Of a DNA stretch of 64,000 nucleotides, positions 33,610 through 43,559 are shown in pieces. The position numbers and the translations under genes are program-made. The notes beneath the pieces are model-generated. The model was given only the letters and a program-made list of their open reading frames with translations, did not search any database and was not told the DNA's origin. The stretch is from Hypanus sabinus (Eukaryota). Where the stretch lies: the NCBI RefSeq assembly GCF_030144855.1, contig NC_082715.1, positions 62,806,001 to 62,870,000 on the forward strand, given 5' to 3'. Each line of letters begins with the position of its first letter. Within the stretch, counting starts at the first letter, position 1.

Positions 33610-34115
33610 ATAAGATCATATGACACAGGAGCAGAGATCAGATATTCAGACCTTGAAGGCTGCTCCGCTATTCGTGGCTGATTTAATATCTCTCTCAATC
33701 CCATTCTCTGGCCATCTCCCCATGACTTTTGACTCCCTGACAAATCGAGAACCTATCAACCTTTGTTTTAACTATATCCAATGACTTGGCCTCCACAGCC
33801 ATTTCTGGCAATGAATTCCACAGATTCACCACCCTCTGGCTAAAGAAATCTCTCCTCAGGCTGTGCCCTTTGGTCCTAGACTCCCCCACTATAAGAAATG
33901 TCCTTTCTCACATCAATTCTGTCTTGGCCTTTTAATATTCAATAGGTTTCAATGATCCCCCCTCATGCTTCAAAATCCCAGTGATTACAGGCCCAGAAAC
34001 ATCAAATGCTCTTGTGCATTAACTATTTCATTCCCAGAATCATTATCGTGAGCCTCCTCTGGACTCTCTCCAATGCCACCACATCTTAGGATTGCTCACA
34101 ATACTCCAAGTGGAA
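33610..34115 (-). mobile_element. CR1 LINE 3' end
   Basis: ORF 33695-33889 encodes SRTKGHSLRRDFFSQRVVNLWNSLP; tail cataagatcata. Confidence 0.85.
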
Positions 34116-34139
34116 CATTAACTTAACATGTCTTTTTCC

Positions 34140-36138
34140 TGGAACTGACTGATGCATTACTGCAATCTTCTACCTGGTAATAGTAATCCTATAGTTGGTA
34201 CACGCATCAGAAAACTTGTCGACACAGCGCTGAATATTGTCTTTTGAATCAGCATTGGAGGCACAATCACAAGCAAAAAAAAAGTCTCTGATGATGTTTG
34301 TCATAACTTTAGATTTTGGTTGGAGCCTTCTGAGGTTGAAGAGTTTCCCATCAATGTGGAACCTGAAATCTTTGTCTATGTCACCATTTCTGAAGGCATC
34401 AGTCAACATGGTGGAAAACGCCAGACTGAATAGCATTGGCACCAACAGGCAATGACAACACCTGGATCAGATGCAATACCAACTGAGGCTTACAAGGGAG
34501 CTGGTGCAATGCTAACAAAAAAGCTCTGTCAGAACTTCCAACTCTTGTGGCAGAAAGAGACAATTCCATAGGAAGCTATAGATGCAGTCATCATCCACCT
34601 GTATAAGTGAAAGGGAAGCCAACAGTACTGAGACGACTACTTGGGAACATTCTTGCTGTCTATTGCAGGCAAGTTCTTGGTCTGTCTTTTGCTCAACCAT
34701 CACATATCATGTCTTGACCGGGGTCTCCTACCAGAGAACCAGTATGGATTCCAGAAAGAATGTATGACCATTGACATAGTGTTTTTTTGCAAGTGAAATG
34801 TCAAGAGCAAAACTCTGACCTGTTCTCCTGTTATATCTATCTGTTAGCAGAAAGGGTTTGTAGAAGAACATGTCAAGGTACAGATGCCCAAAGAAATTCA
34901 TCATTATGTTGCAGCATTAGAGCTCATTTTCAATGTTTAAGAGAAGTTTGAACAAGTATGGATGGCAGGTGTATGGACGGCTATGGTCCAGGTGCACGTT
35001 GATGGAAGTAGGCACTTTAAATGATTCAGCATAGACTAGATGGGCCAAAGGGCTTGTTTCTGTGCTGTACTTTTCTACAGCTCTATGACTTTATTCCAGG
35101 ATGACTTGCAAGCTAAAGTTCAGGACAATGGTGTGACATCCAAGCCCTTCCCTATTGACTTTTTATGGACCCCTCTTGGGCTGGATATGAATGTTTCGAT
35201 TAGAAATGACAAGACAGTGGTCTGCCCAGCATTCAGCACTACATATAGATTTTGTCACCCTAATATCCTGCCGGTCTCTGTTCCTGATAATGACATAGTC
35301 AATTAGATGCCAGTGCTTAAAAAGGGGATGCATTCAAGAGTTTTATTGTGGGTGGGAAGGTGGAAGATGGTGATGATCAACAGTTCGTGTTCGGCACTTG
35401 TTTGGGGTAGTAGGAGACTGCTGACCAATGCCGTATTTCCCAATGACCCAATCCCAGGAGGTGTTGTCAGAGACAGTTCTTGCATTGAAGTCAGCTTGTC
35501 TGCTTTGGGAACAGTGGCAATAACTGATTGCAGTTCTTCATAGAATTTGTCCTTGGCGCCACCTGGCTTGGTCATGATTGGTGAAGTGCTTATGATGGCA
35601 GATGCTTCCCATGTGACAGTATGAGTTTCATAGTCATGAAATGGTCATTCAAACTCTTTGATGGTCCAGCAAGTGTGCCAGTGATCTGCCTACACTGTAA
35701 ATCCAATCCCAGCCTCAAGTCAGTCTTGATTTCCTCTTCCACTCAAAAAGAATGTGTATCCTGCACCCCTTTCACAAAGTTTGCCATCATCTGCAAGCTG
35801 GGTCTCACTCGGGGCTGCAATATCGATAAAATACCAGGCTGATTCTCTCCCTATTAGAGCAATTCCCCTCTTTAATTTTCCTTTCAGTGTATTTCGGTCA
35901 TTGTGATACAGACCCTGCCACTGCTGTGAACTGTCCAGGGAAAGACGGGAGCAGGTAAAGTTGAGGACAATTTTCTAGCTCCTTCCTTAAATCATGGAGA
36001 TGAGCAGTGCATTCCTGAAAGGGCTGCTCAGTCATTCAGGTGGTTGCCAAAAGCCACTGCTGCTCCTTGTCAGGAGATAACGACCCTATGGTCTGAACCA
36101 CCAGTGTGCAGGTTTGTAGCTGGGGTTGTCGGTGTACC
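34140..36138 (-). mobile_element. RTE-clade LINE (EN and RT remnants) with internal inversion; 5' UTR continues at 39143-39685
   Basis: EN KDKFYEELQSVIATVPKADKL (minus, 35303-35575). RT N-half on plus (34455-35155: PGSDAIPTEAYK, IIHLYK, LSIAGK, LPENQYGF, KCQEQN). RT C-half on minus (34170-34452: DGKLFNLRRL, FFFACDCA). Confidence 0.85.
34920..35090 (+). repeat. CR1 3' tail inserted in the RTE RT
   Basis: tttaagagaagtttg...gactagatgggccaaagggcttgtttctgtgctgta...ctctatgact matches the tail at 26455-26610. The RTE frame resumes after it (FQDDLQAKVQ). Confidence 0.85.
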
Positions 36139-36738
36139 AGTAGGTTACCGCAAATAAAGAGGCAGAGGTGCTTTGTTTCAGAAAAGCCGAAGCAACTCAG
36201 TTATTGAACACTAAAACTCAACACAAAGCACTGTTACGTAATTACCTCATCATGTCTGACCTGCCTCTTACAGTGAACCCCAACCCAATATTGGAACGTG
36301 TGAACCCCCCTGCCCTGAGTTCACTAAAACTAGCATTGAGCATGGACAAGCAGCACAGCTCGGGTCCTATGTTCCAAGGGTGGAAGACACACTCATGGTC
36401 ATGTCGTGACAGCAGAATCCTCAAAATCTTGGTGGGCCAGTTCCAGGCTTACCTCTCTTATCTATGGGAAAAATCTTTTCTCTCCTTTCCAAAATGCAGA
36501 AAGGGCTATTGTAAAGAGGCCTAAGGGGATGGTGGTGTGCATTATGGGGGACAAAAACAAATATGGTGGAATCTAAGTAACAGGAATCCAAGAGAATGCC
36601 AGGAGAAAGAAATAGCTGCAAAAGAATTAGATTTACTGAGGAGGGTGGAACTCTGTTGAGAAGCTAACCAGGTGGATGTGGTGTCAGGAATAAAATCACC
36701 TGGCACTGGTAATGGCTGCCCCTATGTCAATTCAGGGT

Positions 36739-37408
36739 TTCAAGGTTTCAAAGGTTTCAAAGGGTTATTTAACGTCAGACAAACGTAGACACTATACATC
36801 CTGAAATGCTTTTTCTTCACAACCATCCACGAACACAGAGGAGTGCCCAAAGAATGAATGACAGTTAAATGTTAAAACCCCAAATTCCCCCCCCCCCACC
36901 AGCTTACCTCCCTCTCACACATAAGTAGCAACAAACAACGATCCACCCTCCCCCCATCAGCAAAAGAAAGCATTGGCATCTGCCACCAAGCACTCAAGCG
37001 TCAGCAAAGACACAGACTTGCAGTACCCCAAAGACTACTTATTCACCTGGTACTCAACATACCACAGGCCCGCTCTCTCCCTAATAAGGGAGAAAGAGGT
37101 GTCTCCGTTTCACAGCGACAGAGGAGACAGAGGAGACATAACAAACAACTCGCTGGTTTATGATGTTAAAAGTCCATTGTGTCGCTTTTCCTGAGCTCTG
37201 TGCCCAAAGACCTTGGGTCTCTGGGCACAGAGCCTTAGATGTTCCAACTCCCACGACACACCGATCTCCAGTCTGGATACCAACCTCCGACCACTCCGCC
37301 TTCAGAGCCACGAAATTTCATACCTCTGGAGGCGAGTGAAGCTCTTAGGCCATGCCCTTGGTGTGCTGAGAAACCCCGAGAGCGGGTCCAATTCCCACAA
37401 AGAACCGT
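36739..37408 (-). repeat. Unclassified non-coding retroposon, copy 2, inserted in the integrase
   Basis: Splits the integrase between ...EDLQSSVA and EL..GQPL. (ttcaaaggt)n tail. Related to 28700-29330. Confidence 0.65.
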
Positions 37409-38461
37409 AGCGACGGACGACTGCAGGTCCTCCTTTGGAGTTGTTCTGAGCCCCAGCAGGACCCGTGGGAGACGATCATGCCAACATCCATCCAACAAGG
37501 AAGCCCTCAGAGCAGTCTTTAAGGAGCAGTGGAACTGTTTGCATAGGCCATTAAACTGCAGGTGATATGCCGTGGTGTGATGTATCCAAACACTGAGGCT
37601 ATCACAGCCCGAGGTCTGATATGCATTGCGGACCACAGTCAGAGGAAATAAGAGATGGGATGTCAGACTGAGCAACTCAGGTGCTGATGTACTCCCAGGC
37701 CAGGTCTGCAGCCATCGTCGATGCTAGAGGGACGACCTCTGGCCAACTGGTGGTACAGTTCACCATGGTATGAAGGTGTGTGAAACCACAGGAATGGGGA
37801 AGAGGATCAACAAAGTCCACATTGACATGATCTCTCTGTTGCTCAGGAACCTCAAAGATGCCAATGCACATCACCCGTCGCGTTCCATAAGTCTGGATCC
37901 TGCCACCATTGGTGTCCAGCCGCAAGATTTTGTTGTTCCTTGCCTTTTCATCAAGAGGCAATGCGGGCAGCACACTCACTTGAGCACTTGTGTCACACAG
38001 GAAGTGTTGACCTTGAAGAGTGTCCTTAATGAATAGTAGACATCTGGAACCTACAGTGTTCACAGACCTCTGATATCCCAGTGTGCTGGCACTGTCGAAG
38101 CTGCAAGGCAGTCGGCACTTCCTGCGTTCATACCAAAGCGAGTGTGGTAAAAGCACAAACCTGGCATCATCTGGGTTGCAGTCACTGGCATCCTTATGGT
38201 GGAGGCCTTGCTAACCAGGCTTATTGAGGTAGGGAAGGGCAAAGGAATGATGCACCACTGCCCCGCTGAGTGTAGACTATAGCCATTTTAGCAAGCTCCC
38301 TATAGCCATCCACGGGTGCACTAGCAAGAGATATGTGAACTAGATCAGGCATTTGCTGCATGAAATGAAACAAGGATGGTGATTTCCCAGGAGAGATAGC
38401 ATGTGGTCCACTAGCTCTGATGGCTTAGCATTGCTGAGACTGGGCAAGGAGAGCAACTGTT

Positions 38462-38640
38462 TTTTTTTTATTACAAAATCCTTTATTACAAATATCGGTG
38501 CTATACAATATATACAAAACAGTGGCAAACACAATTACTGCACTACAAATAGACAATAGACATTACACCAGAATGTTGCCATCCCTATCCACGATGGCAT
38601 TTACACCCCGCGGAGCCCAACGGTCTCGAAACTCCTCCAG
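38462..38640 (-). mobile_element. Tx1/L1-clade LINE 3' stub with poly(A)
   Basis: Minus strand encodes LEEFRDRWAPRGVNAIVDRDGNILV*. AATAAA at 38482-87, poly(A), and TSD ACTGTT (38456-61, 38641-46). Confidence 0.8.
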
Positions 38641-39142
38641 ACTGTTGGGTGTGCTCAGATTCCTATAGTCCAAAAGCCTATAAAAGGTGTTCAGCTGAGT
38701 GTTCTAGTAGACTCACCACTCTCTCAGCCGTGGATTGTCTGGGTGATGCTACCACACAGTAAAACTTAGTGTCACCAGCAGAGATTTCTCACCATGCGAA
38801 CTGGGCCTTGGCTTGTACAAACCAAGCAAAGACATATTGTTCCCAAAACTCCGACAGTTTCAAAGAGACTACGTTGGCCAACGTGTTCAGTAAGTCTGGA
38901 ATAGTCTTAGAGTATCATGGTCACCAGCATAGGTTTTCACAAATAAATTTTGGCAGAGGCATTTTAAGTTTCATGAAAGCCGTAGCAACTCATTTATTGA
39001 ACACGAAATACTAAACACAAAGCATGCTAACAGTCCTTTACATAATTACCTCATCATGTCATACCCACCTCTTGAAGTGAAATGCAACCCAAGGTCGGTG
39101 GTTGTGAGTTCTGTACATTGCCACCAATTACATTACCCTACA

Positions 39143-39685
39143 TGCCCACACATGCCACTTCATTGCTAGCCTGTCACTACAAGACTTAGGTTAGCTTGGG
39201 ATGGGAAGGGTGGATGACGACAGTGACTTGTGCAAGTTTAAAGTGAGAAAGAGTTGTGCAGCATCAAACTCAGTCACATGTCTGAGACCGTCAGTATCCG
39301 GTGGCAAGGTGGAGTCAAGATGGCTGGAGATGGAGTCAGCCGCAGTGGATGACTCTTAGTTCCGTTTCATGCTCTTAGCACCCCACAGCGCCTTTCTGGG
39401 TCTGCCTTCCTGCATGTTGATCCAGACTAGTGGTTACCTCCATGCAGTCTTTGCTAGCTTGGGTAGGCAAGCCCAAACTCACCAAGGGCTGAAGACCCAA
39501 CAGTTACTCTTGCCTGGTTTAGCCTGCTTGTCGAAGCAGTTTACGAAGGTGTGGCCGCTGTCACTAGCAAATGGCTGTTTAGAGCCACAGGTCAGAGCTG
39601 AGTGGGGTTCAATAGTGGACAAACTACTCCCAAGGGAGTATGAATTGCCAGCTCCATCAGAGCTGCTACCCCTCCCTGACACCCC
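39143..39685 (-). mobile_element. 5' UTR of the RTE LINE
   Basis: Contiguous with 36138 once the Gypsy insert and its TSD are removed. GC-richer and structured, and begins with an HDV-like fold. Confidence 0.6.
39508..39685 (-). ncRNA. HDV-like (double-pseudoknot) ribozyme fossil
   Basis: P1 GGGGUGU/ACACCUU, P2 ..CCUGU/AC(C)AGG.., P3 GGC/GCC, P4 CUGCUU-cgac-AAGCAG and J4/2 GCUAA occur in the correct order. P1.1 and L3 are decayed or extended. Confidence 0.65.
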
Positions 39686-40376
39686 ATTCACCAAGGCGGA
39701 CATCTCACGGCATCTTCCCCCTTTTCTCTGGTTTCTTTAAAAAAAAAGTTGCTGATTTGACAATGTTATGCTTTTCTTCAACAATATGAGACTGAAAATT
39801 GATTTATTCTTAAGACTAATAGATAACCACTACGTCTAGGTTTGCTTTAATCATAATTCCGACCATCTATTTCCTGGTGTGAGTCATCCTTAATCCTGAG
39901 GTGAACTCCACATTAGCAGGCACGGGATTACATCACTCTGAATGGAAAGCTCCATTTGGAGTACAATAGGAGTTCATCGATCATGTAGTCCATTCTTGAT
40001 CTCTCCTGAGACTTGTACTGCGCTGGACAGAATTACTCACCTTCATCCTTGGCACCTATCACCTTTGCACAACATCATCTCTGATCTCCAGACCCTGACT
40101 CTGACCCTATGATCTCACCCCCACCAAGCAAAAATTACAATTCTTGATAACCCCTCTGTAACAACAGTCTCCATTCCCTCCAACTGCTCAACCCCTGTTT
40201 ACAACACCACCTCTGCTCCATCAGGCCACTAATTGCTCAGTTGCCAGATCCTCAAACTCCCCAACTCCGGCACAAATGAAGTACTGCGTAGTGGATCTAC
40301 AACTGAACCATTGGTTACCCTGTCCCCTGCTTGATGCATTAGAATTTTCAAGATCTGAATCTTCACAATTTGCTTA

Positions 40377-40406
40377 TGCTGCCATCTAGTGTTTTTAACA
40401 TTGGAG
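40377..40406 (-). promoter_or_regulatory. Candidate CTCF binding site
   Basis: Minus strand ACACTAGATGGCAGCA (one change from the CCACTAGATGGCAGCA-type core), preceded by the upstream-motif-like CTCCAATGTT. Confidence 0.4.
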
Positions 40407-41868
40407 CACAGATTGCCTAGACACTAATGGCATGGAATCCCATTGAATATTGTAAACCTTATTTTTAAAGTACAGTCAAATCCAGTTAATGTAGCCAGAC
40501 TTACATTAAGGATTTTAACTATAGGCACAAGAAGGACATCGGAGAGTAAACTCAGGAACATTTCGAATCAAGTATTCTGGATCATGTCATCTAACAAGCC
40601 CAATTTACATGGATGGTTTGCCTTAACCATGTATGACTATCAGGCAGGTTCTTTCTTATCTGTCTCACACAACTGAAACCTCAACACTTCACAATTAAGT
40701 TTCATCCAATTCATGGATTCCAGCAACTCCCTGAATTTGGTAATATCTGTAAACAGTTAGAATCCCCTCCCCTTAACTTCCATACTAATCACCAGATCTA
40801 AAGATCCTATGGCTTTCTCCCCCAATAAGTTCAGGACAATCCATTCAAATGTCTGTTTCATTTTTCCTGCTCATTTAGCACTACCAAAAGTCTTACTCAA
40901 TATTCCCCATGCATAAACCCAAAACTAATTCTACTATCATGAACTGGTTTTGACCATGAGATACACATGGCCTGTTGTACCTAATTTCACATATCTCTAA
41001 AAATACATCATTCCTCCCAACTCCCATTGTAGCTGATAGATTGCAGCTCTCCAGCATCAAGTATTCTCCTTCCCAGTAAACTTGGCATCTGTTTCTCTTC
41101 AAATCCAAAATCTTTAGCTCTTTAATTTATGAACTATTATTCTCAAATATTATTCTAAACGATTGGCATGATCAAGGTCAGAAATTCTCTGCCAGATCAC
41201 TAAAACATCCTTAGTCAAAACCCAGGAATTTAGGGCATGTGCCTCTTACAACAAAAAAGAAGTAGGGTTGAAAGAAGGATAGACTTAATGAATGTAAAAC
41301 AAAATGATCAGTTTTCTGTGATTGTTGTGATGGCAGTAAGTTAAGTGTGTTGACAGGATTAAGGCTGCAAATATGAAAAGCACTTGAAGAGCTTAACTGG
41401 AGAAAGAATCTTAATGGGGGCCTGCCGGTACAGAACTTAAATTAGAGAGGAGATGGTGAAGTTAGCTAATGTATAATTACCAAAGATAAAAGCATTCAGG
41501 TTAAACTTAAGAAAAAGAAAATGGAAAATAACTAATTATGAACTCATGAAGTTAGGTGAGCAATTGAGAACACAAAAACATAATGGGTTAAAACTTCGGT
41601 GTGAAATAGGTGGAAAGCAATTATCATGCTTGATGGGAGTTTAAGTAACACTTTGAAATTCTAGTCTGAATTTTGGTTTAATGGATGCTTTAGAGCCTCT
41701 AATGTCAGCAATTGATTATTTCAATATTATCTGAATATTTGCTGGTACAGGATGTGAGAAAGCAAACAAGGTAAGATGGCAGCTAATCCAAATGAAATGG
41801 GCGTCATTTCTGAGGGAAGAAATTTTTTTTGTTGAAAGGCATGAAGCTGGCCTCTTATAGCATCATAG

Positions 41869-42088
41869 TCAGGTTTCCTCCCTTATCCTAACAGTGTGTG
41901 TAGTTTGGTAGGTTAATTGGGCACTGAAAGTCACCCCAAGTTTGTAAGTGAATGGTGGGAGGCGGTGGAAGTTGAGAAATGTGGGGAAAATTAAAGATGA
42001 GTTTAATGTGGGACTAACGTAAATGGGCGGTTGATGGTTGGTGTAGATTGAGTAACCCAGAGAGCCAGTTTTCATGCTGCATCTCTCA
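41869..42088 (+). mobile_element. V-SINE 3' fragment
   Basis: ggtttcctcc...ggtaggttaattgg...gaaatgtgggga...aaatgggcggttgatggttgg...tgctgcatctctc parallels the 3' half of 7991-8335. Confidence 0.6.
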
Positions 42089-42594
42089 TCGCTAAATTCC
42101 CTTTTGAAAGATCTGAATGCAGAGCGTGTAGTTAGTTCACAAAACAGATTTTTCTCTTCCTCTGAAAGAGTAATGTGTTCTTAAACAAAAGGATAATTTC
42201 TTTCATTGTTGAAGCAAATCCAGCAAGCATTTGTCTCCAGTTTTACCTACTTAAGTAAATTCCATATCCATGAATTCCTGATCTATTTTGCTAGAAGTGA
42301 CTTTCTGAAAGGGGCACTGCTTGTTCAGGATTTGAAGTATGACACCGTGCTAAGTTAAGTGGTTCCAGGAATGTGGAAATGTAGAACAGCAAAAAAAACA
42401 GTACTCTTACAACAGCTGTTTCTGCCCAAAATTTGATTTGATCAGGTCATTTTGCATTAGGAAATAGCACAACTGAATCTCAAAGTCTGAAACAATTGTG
42501 CATGTATTATTATCTCTTTAGCTCAATAATATGTACACATAAAATACCTTGCGTATGGAAAGTGTCCAAAATAGGGCAATAGATTAGAAAAATG

Positions 42595-42990
42595 GTGGGG
42601 GGGAATCTCATTAAAACCTATCAAATATTGAAAGGCTTAGATAGAGTGGACAGGGACTAGATGTTTCCTACAGTGGGGAGTCTAGGACCAGAGGGCACAG
42701 CCTTAGAATAGAGGGACGTCCATTTAGAACAAAGGTGAGAAAGAATTTCTTTAGCCAGGGGTTGGTGAATCTGTGGAATTCATTTCCACAGATGGCTGTG
42801 GAGATCAAGTCATTTGCTATATCTAAAGCTGAGATTGATAGGTTCTTGATTAGTAGGGACATCAAAGGTTCTGGAGAGAAGGTAAGAAAATGGGATTCAG
42901 AGGAATAATAAATCATCCATAATGGAATGGCAGAGCTGACGTGATGGGGCCTAATGGCCTAATTCTGCTCCTTTGTCTTAAAGTCTATGT
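42595..42990 (+). mobile_element. CR1 LINE 3' end
   Basis: LIKTYQILKGLDRVD...SRTRGHSLRI...NFFSQGLVNLWNS; tail cctaattctgctcct. Confidence 0.88.
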
Positions 42991-43559
42991 ACTGGCAGTT
43001 CCTATATCCGCTTCTCCTATGCCTATCCCTTCCCATTTTGGAAGTATTGGAGAACATACCACTCAGAGATCAAGGTCTCAAATGTAGAAGTCAGCTGCCC
43101 ATGGGATAAGCAGGCTTTTGATGGAATTTTCATAATGGAGCATGCAATTGACACTGAATATTGGAGCCAATAATAAACAAGTGTGTATATTTTGCAAGAA
43201 CTATTAATGTATATCACATTGTATATACATGCTTCTTTTCAAGAAAAGCCATCCATCTGTTTCTACTGCTGCTCTTCTGTTGTGGTTAAGTGATTTCATG
43301 GCTGACATTTTTTTTGAATAAAGCACCATCTGGAGAAAGTGCTGAGAAAAAAAGACTAAATATAGGCTAGGTCAGAAATCTGATCCGATAATAGAATCAT
43401 GATGCAAATGGAGGTGGTGGAGTGAGTGGGTGGTGGGAGATATTCTGTTGCCAGATACTTGTAAGTTTCCCACAGATCCTGCCAACTTTAACACTGACAG
43501 AATTTTATATTTTTTAAATAAATTTCCATCACAACCAGTCAGCATGGCAGTCAGATGGA

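Follow-up and report, generated by a model that had tools for sequence, protein, structure and literature searches.

The question raised by this locus is whether the 5' end of a transposable element encodes, or once encoded, an RNA that cleaves itself. Within a 64,000-nucleotide stretch of Hypanus sabinus contig NC_082715.1 (i.e. the window; positions 62,806,001 to 62,870,000), the minus strand between 39692 and 39507 lies at the start of a long interspersed nuclear element (LINE) and can be folded into helices arranged like those in the ribozyme of hepatitis delta virus (HDV). HDV-like ribozymes are established at the 5' ends of RTE, R2, R4 and L1 elements (PMC3774820, PMC6765202). Comparison of the window copy with its family and with copies from other genomes indicates that the 5' module of this family is probably a self-cleaving HDV-like ribozyme, of which the window copy would be a decayed member.

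The position of the candidate was examined by mapping Logan contigs from four related organisms onto the region (80% likeness threshold, with a second pass in 10-nt bins). The sequence was multi-copy across 38700-39692 and single copy past 39692, with summed contig depth dropping from thousands to single at a repeat edge between 39691 and 39692. Further loci were fetched from ENA assemblies through relatives of the reverse transcriptase (RT), for which an HMMER search with the RT piece returned 1477 relatives. Two of these loci, the eukaryotic contigs L001 and L003, contain the same 5' untranslated region (UTR), endonuclease (EN) and RT in a single line. Aligned to them, the window copy runs on the minus strand from 39692 to 39142 (5' UTR), is interrupted at 39141-36139, continues from 36138 to 35173 with endonuclease-domain remnants and ends in RT remnants of mixed orientation (34134-34820), of which 34461-34820 is inverted to the plus strand and 34439-34134 is minus. 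Among the window's open reading frames (ORFs), minus-strand remnants of the EN (35575-35163) and RT (34445-34170) were identified. As the repeat boundary coincides with colinearity to EN- and RT-bearing copies, the candidate is the true 5' end of the LINE copy, the location that an earlier, sequence-only reading had assigned to it. Judged by alignment, 39692-39507 derives, with mutations, from the RNA module that forms the 5' terminus of an EN+RT LINE family. Searches of the 64-kb window with blastn and nhmmer detected no second copy of this head, and a protein-word search with a 74-amino acid (aa) ORF overlying the candidate gave no match. Full-length marine relatives (L006 and L007) have an RTE-type architecture, i.e. 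ORF1 is 68 aa long and ORF2, of 1050 aa, has no domains but Exo_endo_phos and RVT_1; the window EN and RT remnants are 43-50% identical to this ORF2, and the ORF architecture of these relatives fits the RTE clade. A protein atlas search returned generic EN+RT clusters only.

All segments listed in the sequence-only reading were found on the minus strand, and they follow the strand order of a double pseudoknot (P1-5', J1/2, P2-5', P3-5', L3, P3-3', P1-3', P4, J4/2, P2-3'), an order that is also present in the family consensus and in an independent copy, L005 (ENA assembly ERZ21939214). The element opens with a leader, GGTGAAT (39692-39686; loose contig ends at 39692), which is the remnant of a 9-nt terminal duplication whose first 4 nt are missing here. 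The P1 5' strand GGGGUGU (39685-39679, candidate G1 at 39685) pairs with ACACCUU (39552-39546), a long-range helix also predicted by RNAalifold. P1 had been described as having a single G1-U wobble; the wobble at G1 is present (G39685 facing U39546), but the window copy contains a second at G2-U. Joining strand J1/2 is 81 nt long (39678-39598) and holds the hairpins CAGCTC-TGATG-GAGCTG (39665-39649) and TACTCCC-TT-GGGAGTA (about 39640-39625), with GGGGT (39672-68) opposite ACCCC (39608-04). For P2, the earlier pairing of CCUGU with ACCAGG (39518-39513) has both strands in place but only four contiguous pairs (CCUG/CAGG); the family-type P2 comprises 10 bp between 39597-39588 and 39516-39507, with two mismatches in the window copy. 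P3 pairs GGC (39586-39584) with GCC (39555-39553) and encloses a 28-nt L3 (39583-39556) that begins UCU and ends in G, its two end bases (U39583 and G39556), a candidate pair, being kept in all copies read. An L3 U...G pair is conserved in HDV-like ribozymes (PMC3774820). A hairpin of 5-6 bp within L3 (39575-39557) is broken by two mismatches at 39573 and 39572. Downstream of P1-3' are the dinucleotide CG (39545-39544, the 3' half of P1.1), the P4 hairpin CUGCUU-CGAC-AAGCAG (39539-39524) and J4/2 GCUAAAC (39523-39517), in which C39522 of the sequence C-U-A-A is the candidate catalytic base. P1.1 is broken in the window copy by a U39581-C39545 mismatch, in agreement with the decay suspected earlier; non-Watson-Crick pairs in P1.1 are tolerated in the class (PMC13635239). 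With P1.1, P2 and the L3 hairpin damaged, and the LINE body split by a 3-kb insertion and an inversion, the window copy is by its sequence an inactive fossil.

The extent to which such a fold arises by chance was assessed with two descriptors. The loose descriptor (7-bp P1 with G-U allowed, 3-bp P3, L3 of up to 40 nt, P2 of at least 4 bp, P4 of at least 6 bp, any C in J4/2 and no P1.1) matched Markov-1 random sequence at about 227 sites for each 64-kb strand, as compared to 212 and 262 sites on the two strands of the window, and gave 20 alternative solutions inside the candidate 220-nt stretch. The single-copy pattern is no better than chance. Because random sequence is matched equally often, significance can come only from family-level evidence, and the same counts favour a reading in which the HDV likeness is a chance pairing in a G-rich repeat 5' end with no biological meaning. 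Under the strict descriptor, P1 must be 7 bp long with G as its first base, P1-3' must be followed by GG, P3 must have three Watson-Crick pairs and L3 must begin UC(C/U), with C-N-R-A before P2-3', P2 of at least 5 bp and P4 of at least 4 bp. This descriptor matched 77 sites in 38.4 Mb of random sequence (about 2 per Mb; 4 with P2 of at least 8 bp), so that about 4 in 10,000 would be expected for a named 200-nt stretch. L005 was the sole strict match across the window and the 11 loci scanned (L001-L011).

A family consensus was derived from summed contig depth, which falls into three zones, i.e. about 9000 at 39691-39654, about 120 at 39653-39605 and about 2400 at 39604-39513. The low-copy zone consists of the second J1/2 hairpin and the 3' arm of the first, with different fillings in other copies, and J1/2 is family-conserved at 39678-39654. 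The two perfect hairpins reported earlier are therefore genuine but specific to a low-copy subfamily, and lie outside the family design. Most copies are clipped at 39561-64 owing to greater divergence in L3, and many stop matching the window copy at 39513 because of its P2-3' mutations. On the minus strand, the consensus change U>C at 39547 (80-91% of depth) converts the G2-U pair of P1 to G2-C, and C>G at 39545 (74% of depth) converts the two bases after P1-3' to GG. Four changes (G>C at 39593, A>G at 39511, C>U at 39512 and A>G at 39508) turn P2 into a 10-bp helix of CUCUCACCUG with CAGGUGAGGG. The 5-bp hairpin within L3 is rebuilt by C>U at 39573 and A>G at 39572, further L3 changes fall at 39565, 39566 and 39578, and A>G at 39528 alters a P4 pair from U-A to U-G. 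None of the proposed pairs is broken by a majority consensus change. The P1 3' strand reads ACACCCU in the consensus, with ACACCCC making up about 40% of depth and also occurring in L003, L004 and L005, so that U or C stands opposite G1. Loose ends of the main subfamily give a consensus CCTGTGGCTCCAAG... in which L3 starts UCC, and the common sequence of the clipped copies, CCTGTGGCTCCAAGTAGCTGTTTGCATGCA, contains both the UCC start and a GCUGUU-UGCAUGC-AACAGC hairpin. P1.1 is possible in the consensus on both strands, with L3 UC(C/U) facing GG; its restoration, which the sequence-only reading had made a test of the fold, was thus observed, with GG in 74% of depth and a UCC start in the main subfamily and in L003, L004 and L005.

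The ancestral fold of the family was very probably an HDV-like nested double pseudoknot at the LINE 5' end. In this reconstruction, a 7-bp P1 would be formed by GGGGUGU and ACACCC(U/C), with G1 opposite U or C, and would be followed by a structured J1/2 of about 80-90 nt, a 10-bp P2 and P3 of GGC/GCC. L3 would start with UCC, end with G and carry an inserted hairpin of 5-6 bp, and the GG directly past P1-3' would pair with the CC of L3 as P1.1. A 6-bp P4 hairpin would then lead into J4/2 of sequence G-C-(U/C)-A-A-A-C, with C at the catalytic position. Two other assignments were considered and rejected. With the L3 hairpin taken as P3 (loop of 7-9 nt), the conserved GG would find no CC in the loop, and P3-3' and P1-3' would no longer be adjacent. 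As for the head of a tRNA-derived short interspersed nuclear element (SINE), a B-box-like GGGCTTCAAACCC lies just downstream of P2-3' (from 39512); this is some 190 nt away from the 5' end, and an A box was not seen.

Copies from other genomes were then compared with this design. L005 is 87% identical to L003 and 71% identical to the window's family and is nearly intact, with P1 7/7 (G1-C), P1.1 CC/GG 2/2, P3 3/3, P4 6/6, P2 9/10 and a 26-nt L3 that contains the hairpin; L003 and its near-duplicate L004 carry a homologous but decayed head. J4/2 is invariant across the window, the consensus and these three copies except for the base after the catalytic C (UAA in the window, CAA in L003, L004 and L005). 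Compensatory changes were observed in P4, where pair 2 is U-A in the window and its family and C-G in L003, L004 and L005 (CCGCUU/AAGCGG in L005), and pair 3, otherwise G-C, changes to A-U in one more subfamily, which has the loose-end consensus CCACUU-CGAC-AGGUGG. Pair 2 of the L3 hairpin is C-G in L005 and the window's family and U-A in L003 and L004. Covariation of the helices, proposed earlier as a test, was therefore found for two pairs of P4 and one of the L3 hairpin, but not for P1, P2 and P3, which are invariant. The long L3, previously singled out as an unusual variant, is a conserved feature of the family and not an accident of the window copy. Identity between the family consensus and L005 is 94% in the 5' block and 88% in the core, as compared to 62% in the middle of J1/2 and 60-75% in the downstream 5' UTR. 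RNAalifold, run without any HDV assumption, returned P1 as a long-range closing helix, two J1/2 helices, the L3 hairpin and P4. A mere chance pairing is highly improbable in the face of consensus changes that repair exactly the positions required by the HDV model, a strict match at the homologous site of another genome (L005), a core better conserved than its surroundings and two covarying stems.

Several points nevertheless weigh against the ribozyme reading, which remains the probable one. The consensus was built from depth-weighted contig tables and not from aligned copies, and only three independent lineages were readable as sequences. The strict descriptor was composed after the fold had been seen, its core requirements being canonical (PMC13635239, PMC3774820). 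P1, P2, P3 and P1.1 are invariant across the three lineages, which is no evidence either way, and P1, P2 and P3 consequently gain no support from covariation. L3 measures 28 nt in the window and 26 nt in L005 against the usual 7-8 nt or so of the class, P3 itself being 3 bp. J4/2 is 7 nt long unless U39587 pairs with A39518 and C39517 is bulged; the spacing of C39522 to P2 would be canonical only with this presumed arrangement. No match to an Rfam HDV family was obtained with cmscan, either on window positions 36000-43000 (E<=10) or on L004-L007 (E<=5), and the rows returned were chance microRNA and long non-coding RNA models only; such silence would be the expected outcome if the covariance models cannot accommodate so long a J1/2 and L3. 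We know of no active natural ribozyme with a hairpin-bearing L3 of 26-28 nt, and to our knowledge all characterised HDV-like members have a short active-site L3. No description of a hairpin-bearing HDV-type L3 was found in a literature search, the reach of which did not include Ruminski et al. 2011 and Webb and Luptak 2011.

A further point on the same side concerns the element termini. Contigs from three runs (X1, X2 and X6) that reach 39692 extend as CCA(T/A) on the plus strand and then enter random flank, and the family therefore begins (A)TGGGGTGA-ATGGGGTGT. This start contains a 9-nt tandem duplication of the terminal motif (ATGGGGTGA-ATGGGGTGT), the first four bases of which are absent from the window copy. 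L003, L005 and the window have common sequence from (T/A)AT-GGGGTG onward and are unrelated upstream; next to G1, L003 and L005 share TAT and the window's family shares (A)TGGGGTGAAT. A GGGGUG motif lies 2-3 nt from every family 5' end, and G1 at 39685 belongs to a second motif, 9-10 nt inside the window-family boundary. The expectation that full-length copies begin at the GGGGTGT of 39685 was thus not borne out, as copies start 2-3 nt upstream of G1 in the sister family (L003, L005) and 9-10 nt upstream in the window's family (about 39694-95 equivalents). Cutting at 39685 would strip the leader in each cycle, yet the leader is inherited. Three options follow. P1 may in practice use the terminal GGGGUGA as its 5' strand, at 6 bp and with an A-A mismatch; the RNA that is copied may usually be uncut; or the head may be non-catalytic.

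Under the first option, the ribozyme would be real but would cut at the terminal GGGGUGA of the duplicated leader, the internal GGGGUGU acting as a competing P1 strand. The leader up to 39691/92, with TGG added, is retained by copies that number thousands when weighted by depth, the start (A)TGGGGTGA mirrors ATGGGGTG at the start of L003 and L005, and from their sequence both motifs could pair with the same ACACCCU strand. The internal motif, however, gives the better P1 (7 bp), and is the only one available in the window copy, from which the terminal GG is missing. Cleavage at the terminal motif is rated as rather unlikely.

Under the last option, the head would be a conserved structured 5'-UTR element that does not cleave, such as a site bound by the protein of the element itself or a structure for initiating translation, with a partial or ancestral HDV likeness and an RNA 5' end set by initiation at the conserved (A/T)AT upstream of GGGGUG. 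The 2-3 nt or 9-nt duplicated leader retained before G1 in independent copies looks as if the template were uncut, the L3 hairpin and long J4/2 are unlike every characterised HDV-like ribozyme, and Rfam is silent. Conservation and covariation of P4 and the L3 hairpin, moreover, indicate a structured RNA and not catalysis. Set against this, the catalytic signature is complete in both the consensus and L005 (U or C opposite G1, an L3 of the form UCC...G, GG after P1-3' and C-N-A-A in J4/2), a signature for which a purely structural element has no need, and the strict descriptor is matched by chance at only about 2 sites per Mb. We regard a non-cleaving element as an unlikely explanation, to be placed below cleavage at the terminal motif.

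Self-cleavage by the family's 5' module is therefore retained as the probable reading. The location of the module, its compatibility with the fold, its repair in the consensus, its conservation and the limited covariation were directly observed; catalysis, and the identity of the tandem GGGGUG that acts as P1, are what we infer. An element lacking a precise start of its own would be transcribed within longer RNAs, and the ribozyme would cut 5' of a terminal GGGGUG and so free the element RNA, by analogy with RTE, R2, R4 and L1Tc elements, whose 5' ends are processed by HDV-like ribozymes. It may be, although we advance this only tentatively, that the LINE family and its non-autonomous derivatives (thousands of copies in several related animal genomes) carry an active subclass of HDV-like ribozyme, in which a hairpin is set into L3 between the P1.1-forming UCC and the conserved G, and in which the tandem duplication of P1-5' provides two cleavage registers.

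Other loci were examined as carriers of the head. It was absent from L001, L009, L010 and L011, which are 5'-truncated or belong to other families. L012 (1700-2000) and L013 (1900-2290) share the downstream 5' UTR, from ..GGTGAG.T.GGGCTTGTC.. on, with unrelated sequence replacing the head; either heads can be swapped as modules or 5' truncation has removed the head from these two copies. In the marine full-length relatives L006 and L007, the sequence opens GTCAGGTTAGG... and does not satisfy the strict descriptor. Their starts, GTCAGGTTAGGTATTCC.. (L006 1-30 and 110-140; L007 about 70-100), are faintly like GTCAGGGAGGGGTAGC of the window family and contain no GGGGUGU, and L006 opens with its 5' end repeated in inverted orientation. 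A metagenome pattern scan with a 21-mer of the 5' block yielded no match, and the one match to a core 22-mer (L002) was an unrelated contig that matched by chance.

The remaining observations concern the surroundings of the LINE copy. Orthologous single-copy contigs from organisms A and B contain 30 extra bases (plus strand TCATTAAGGACATGTACAGATACTGTATAA) placed exactly where the flank meets the LINE 5' end (39692); either the window's genome has lost these bases or those organisms have gained them. The LINE copy is split outside the ribozyme by a nested 3-kb insertion on the minus strand (36139-39141), where colinearity with L001 jumps from 39142 to 36138. This insertion contains decayed frames of a long terminal repeat (LTR) retroelement on the minus strand, i.e. 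a protease (DTSA; ..FLCDTSAQVSVLP..) and an integrase (HHTTAYH.QFNGL). Direct repeats of about 170 nt (36136-36303 and 38923-39107; about 75% identical) lie just within its ends and may derive either from LTRs or from some other short repeat present twice. The repeat at 38700-39141 is very abundant (summed depth up to about 11000 in X1) and has a sharp plus-strand edge at 39142, where 96-131 contigs end per run in X1, X2 and X6 and 9 in the small run X5; as this edge is also that of the nested insertion, the inserted element belongs to a high-copy family. Within the insertion, a near-perfect 20-bp hairpin (37192-37236; GAGCTCTGTGCCCAAAGACC / GGTCTCTGGGCACAGAGCC) gave weak Rfam microRNA-precursor scores (E about 1-2), probably by chance. 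The RT region is internally inverted, with one segment on the plus strand adjoining one on the minus strand, and a 25-nt inverted repeat lies at 34439-63 and 35459-83. The region is bracketed by inverted repeats about 8.8 kb apart (33675-33886 and 42675-42919; 184 nt at 79% and 38 nt at 89% complementary), which are probably oppositely oriented CR1-type 3' ends (ORF ..FFSQRVVNLWNSLP..).

The window locus itself is ordinary, being an inactive fossil within a broken LINE copy. Were the family module active, L3 would be shown to tolerate a helical insertion and the structural definition of the HDV-like class would widen. Existing descriptor and covariance-model searches would miss such ribozymes, which would explain the silence of Rfam, and a large multi-species set of copies would become available for work on what defines the 5' ends of LINEs. 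The offset of element 5' ends from G1, together with the duplicated P1 strand, offers a concrete test of how ribozyme cleavage relates to 5'-junction formation in a dispersed LINE.

Among known systems, the truncated twister ribozymes at the 5' ends of Schistosoma RTE elements (PMC8501958, PMC7761336) occupy the same niche and have the same presumed processing role, but belong to another ribozyme class; neither twister-like features nor an Rfam twister match was found here. The genomic and antigenomic HDV ribozymes and the CPEB3 ribozyme (PMC13635239) share with the present fold the canonical order of P1, P1.1, P4, P2 and P3, a 2-bp P1.1 and a G1-U first pair, and the J4/2 C would likewise lie four positions before P2 if U39587 pairs with A39518. 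They are compact (about 68-85 nt, with an L3 of 7-8 nt and a short J1/2), whereas the fold described here spans about 180-200 nt. The R2 ribozymes (Eickbush and Eickbush 2010; PMC3774820) have a 5'-terminal HDV-like fold like that predicted here, with a conserved core, L3 U...G (a putative pair here) and J4/2 C, and P4 and J1/2 are variable in both. A further likeness is that in R2 the cleavage position can vary relative to the first element base, shaping the 5' junctions (PMC3774820). R2, however, is site-specific in 28S rDNA and upstream cleavage uses rRNA as a P1 strand (PMC3774820), whereas the present element is dispersed and the upstream sequence is a duplicate of its own.

The drz-Agam-2 ribozymes of RTE elements in Anopheles gambiae (Ruminski et al. 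2011, as far as recounted in PMC3774820, PMC6765202 and PMC4908430) likewise occupy the 5' terminus of an EN+RT element with no evident promoter of its own. To the extent that these accounts describe them, they have the same double-pseudoknot strand order, a large structured J1/2 (P1.2-like) between P1 and P2 and the same presumed role, i.e. release of the element RNA from a co-transcript; in the large Agam-2 ribozymes, structured J1/2 (P1.2) is activating (PMC4908430). The present family differs in its host, another animal lineage rich in CR1, Penelope and LTR elements, in the 2-10 nt that its copies retain before the predicted G1, in its lack of an Rfam match and in an activity that is so far a prediction. 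It differs also in an L3 of 26-28 nt with an internal hairpin in place of one of 7-8 nt. L3 is the point of departure from the known class: its two ends, UCC and the terminal G, from which the active-site loop is normally built, are here separated by a conserved hairpin.

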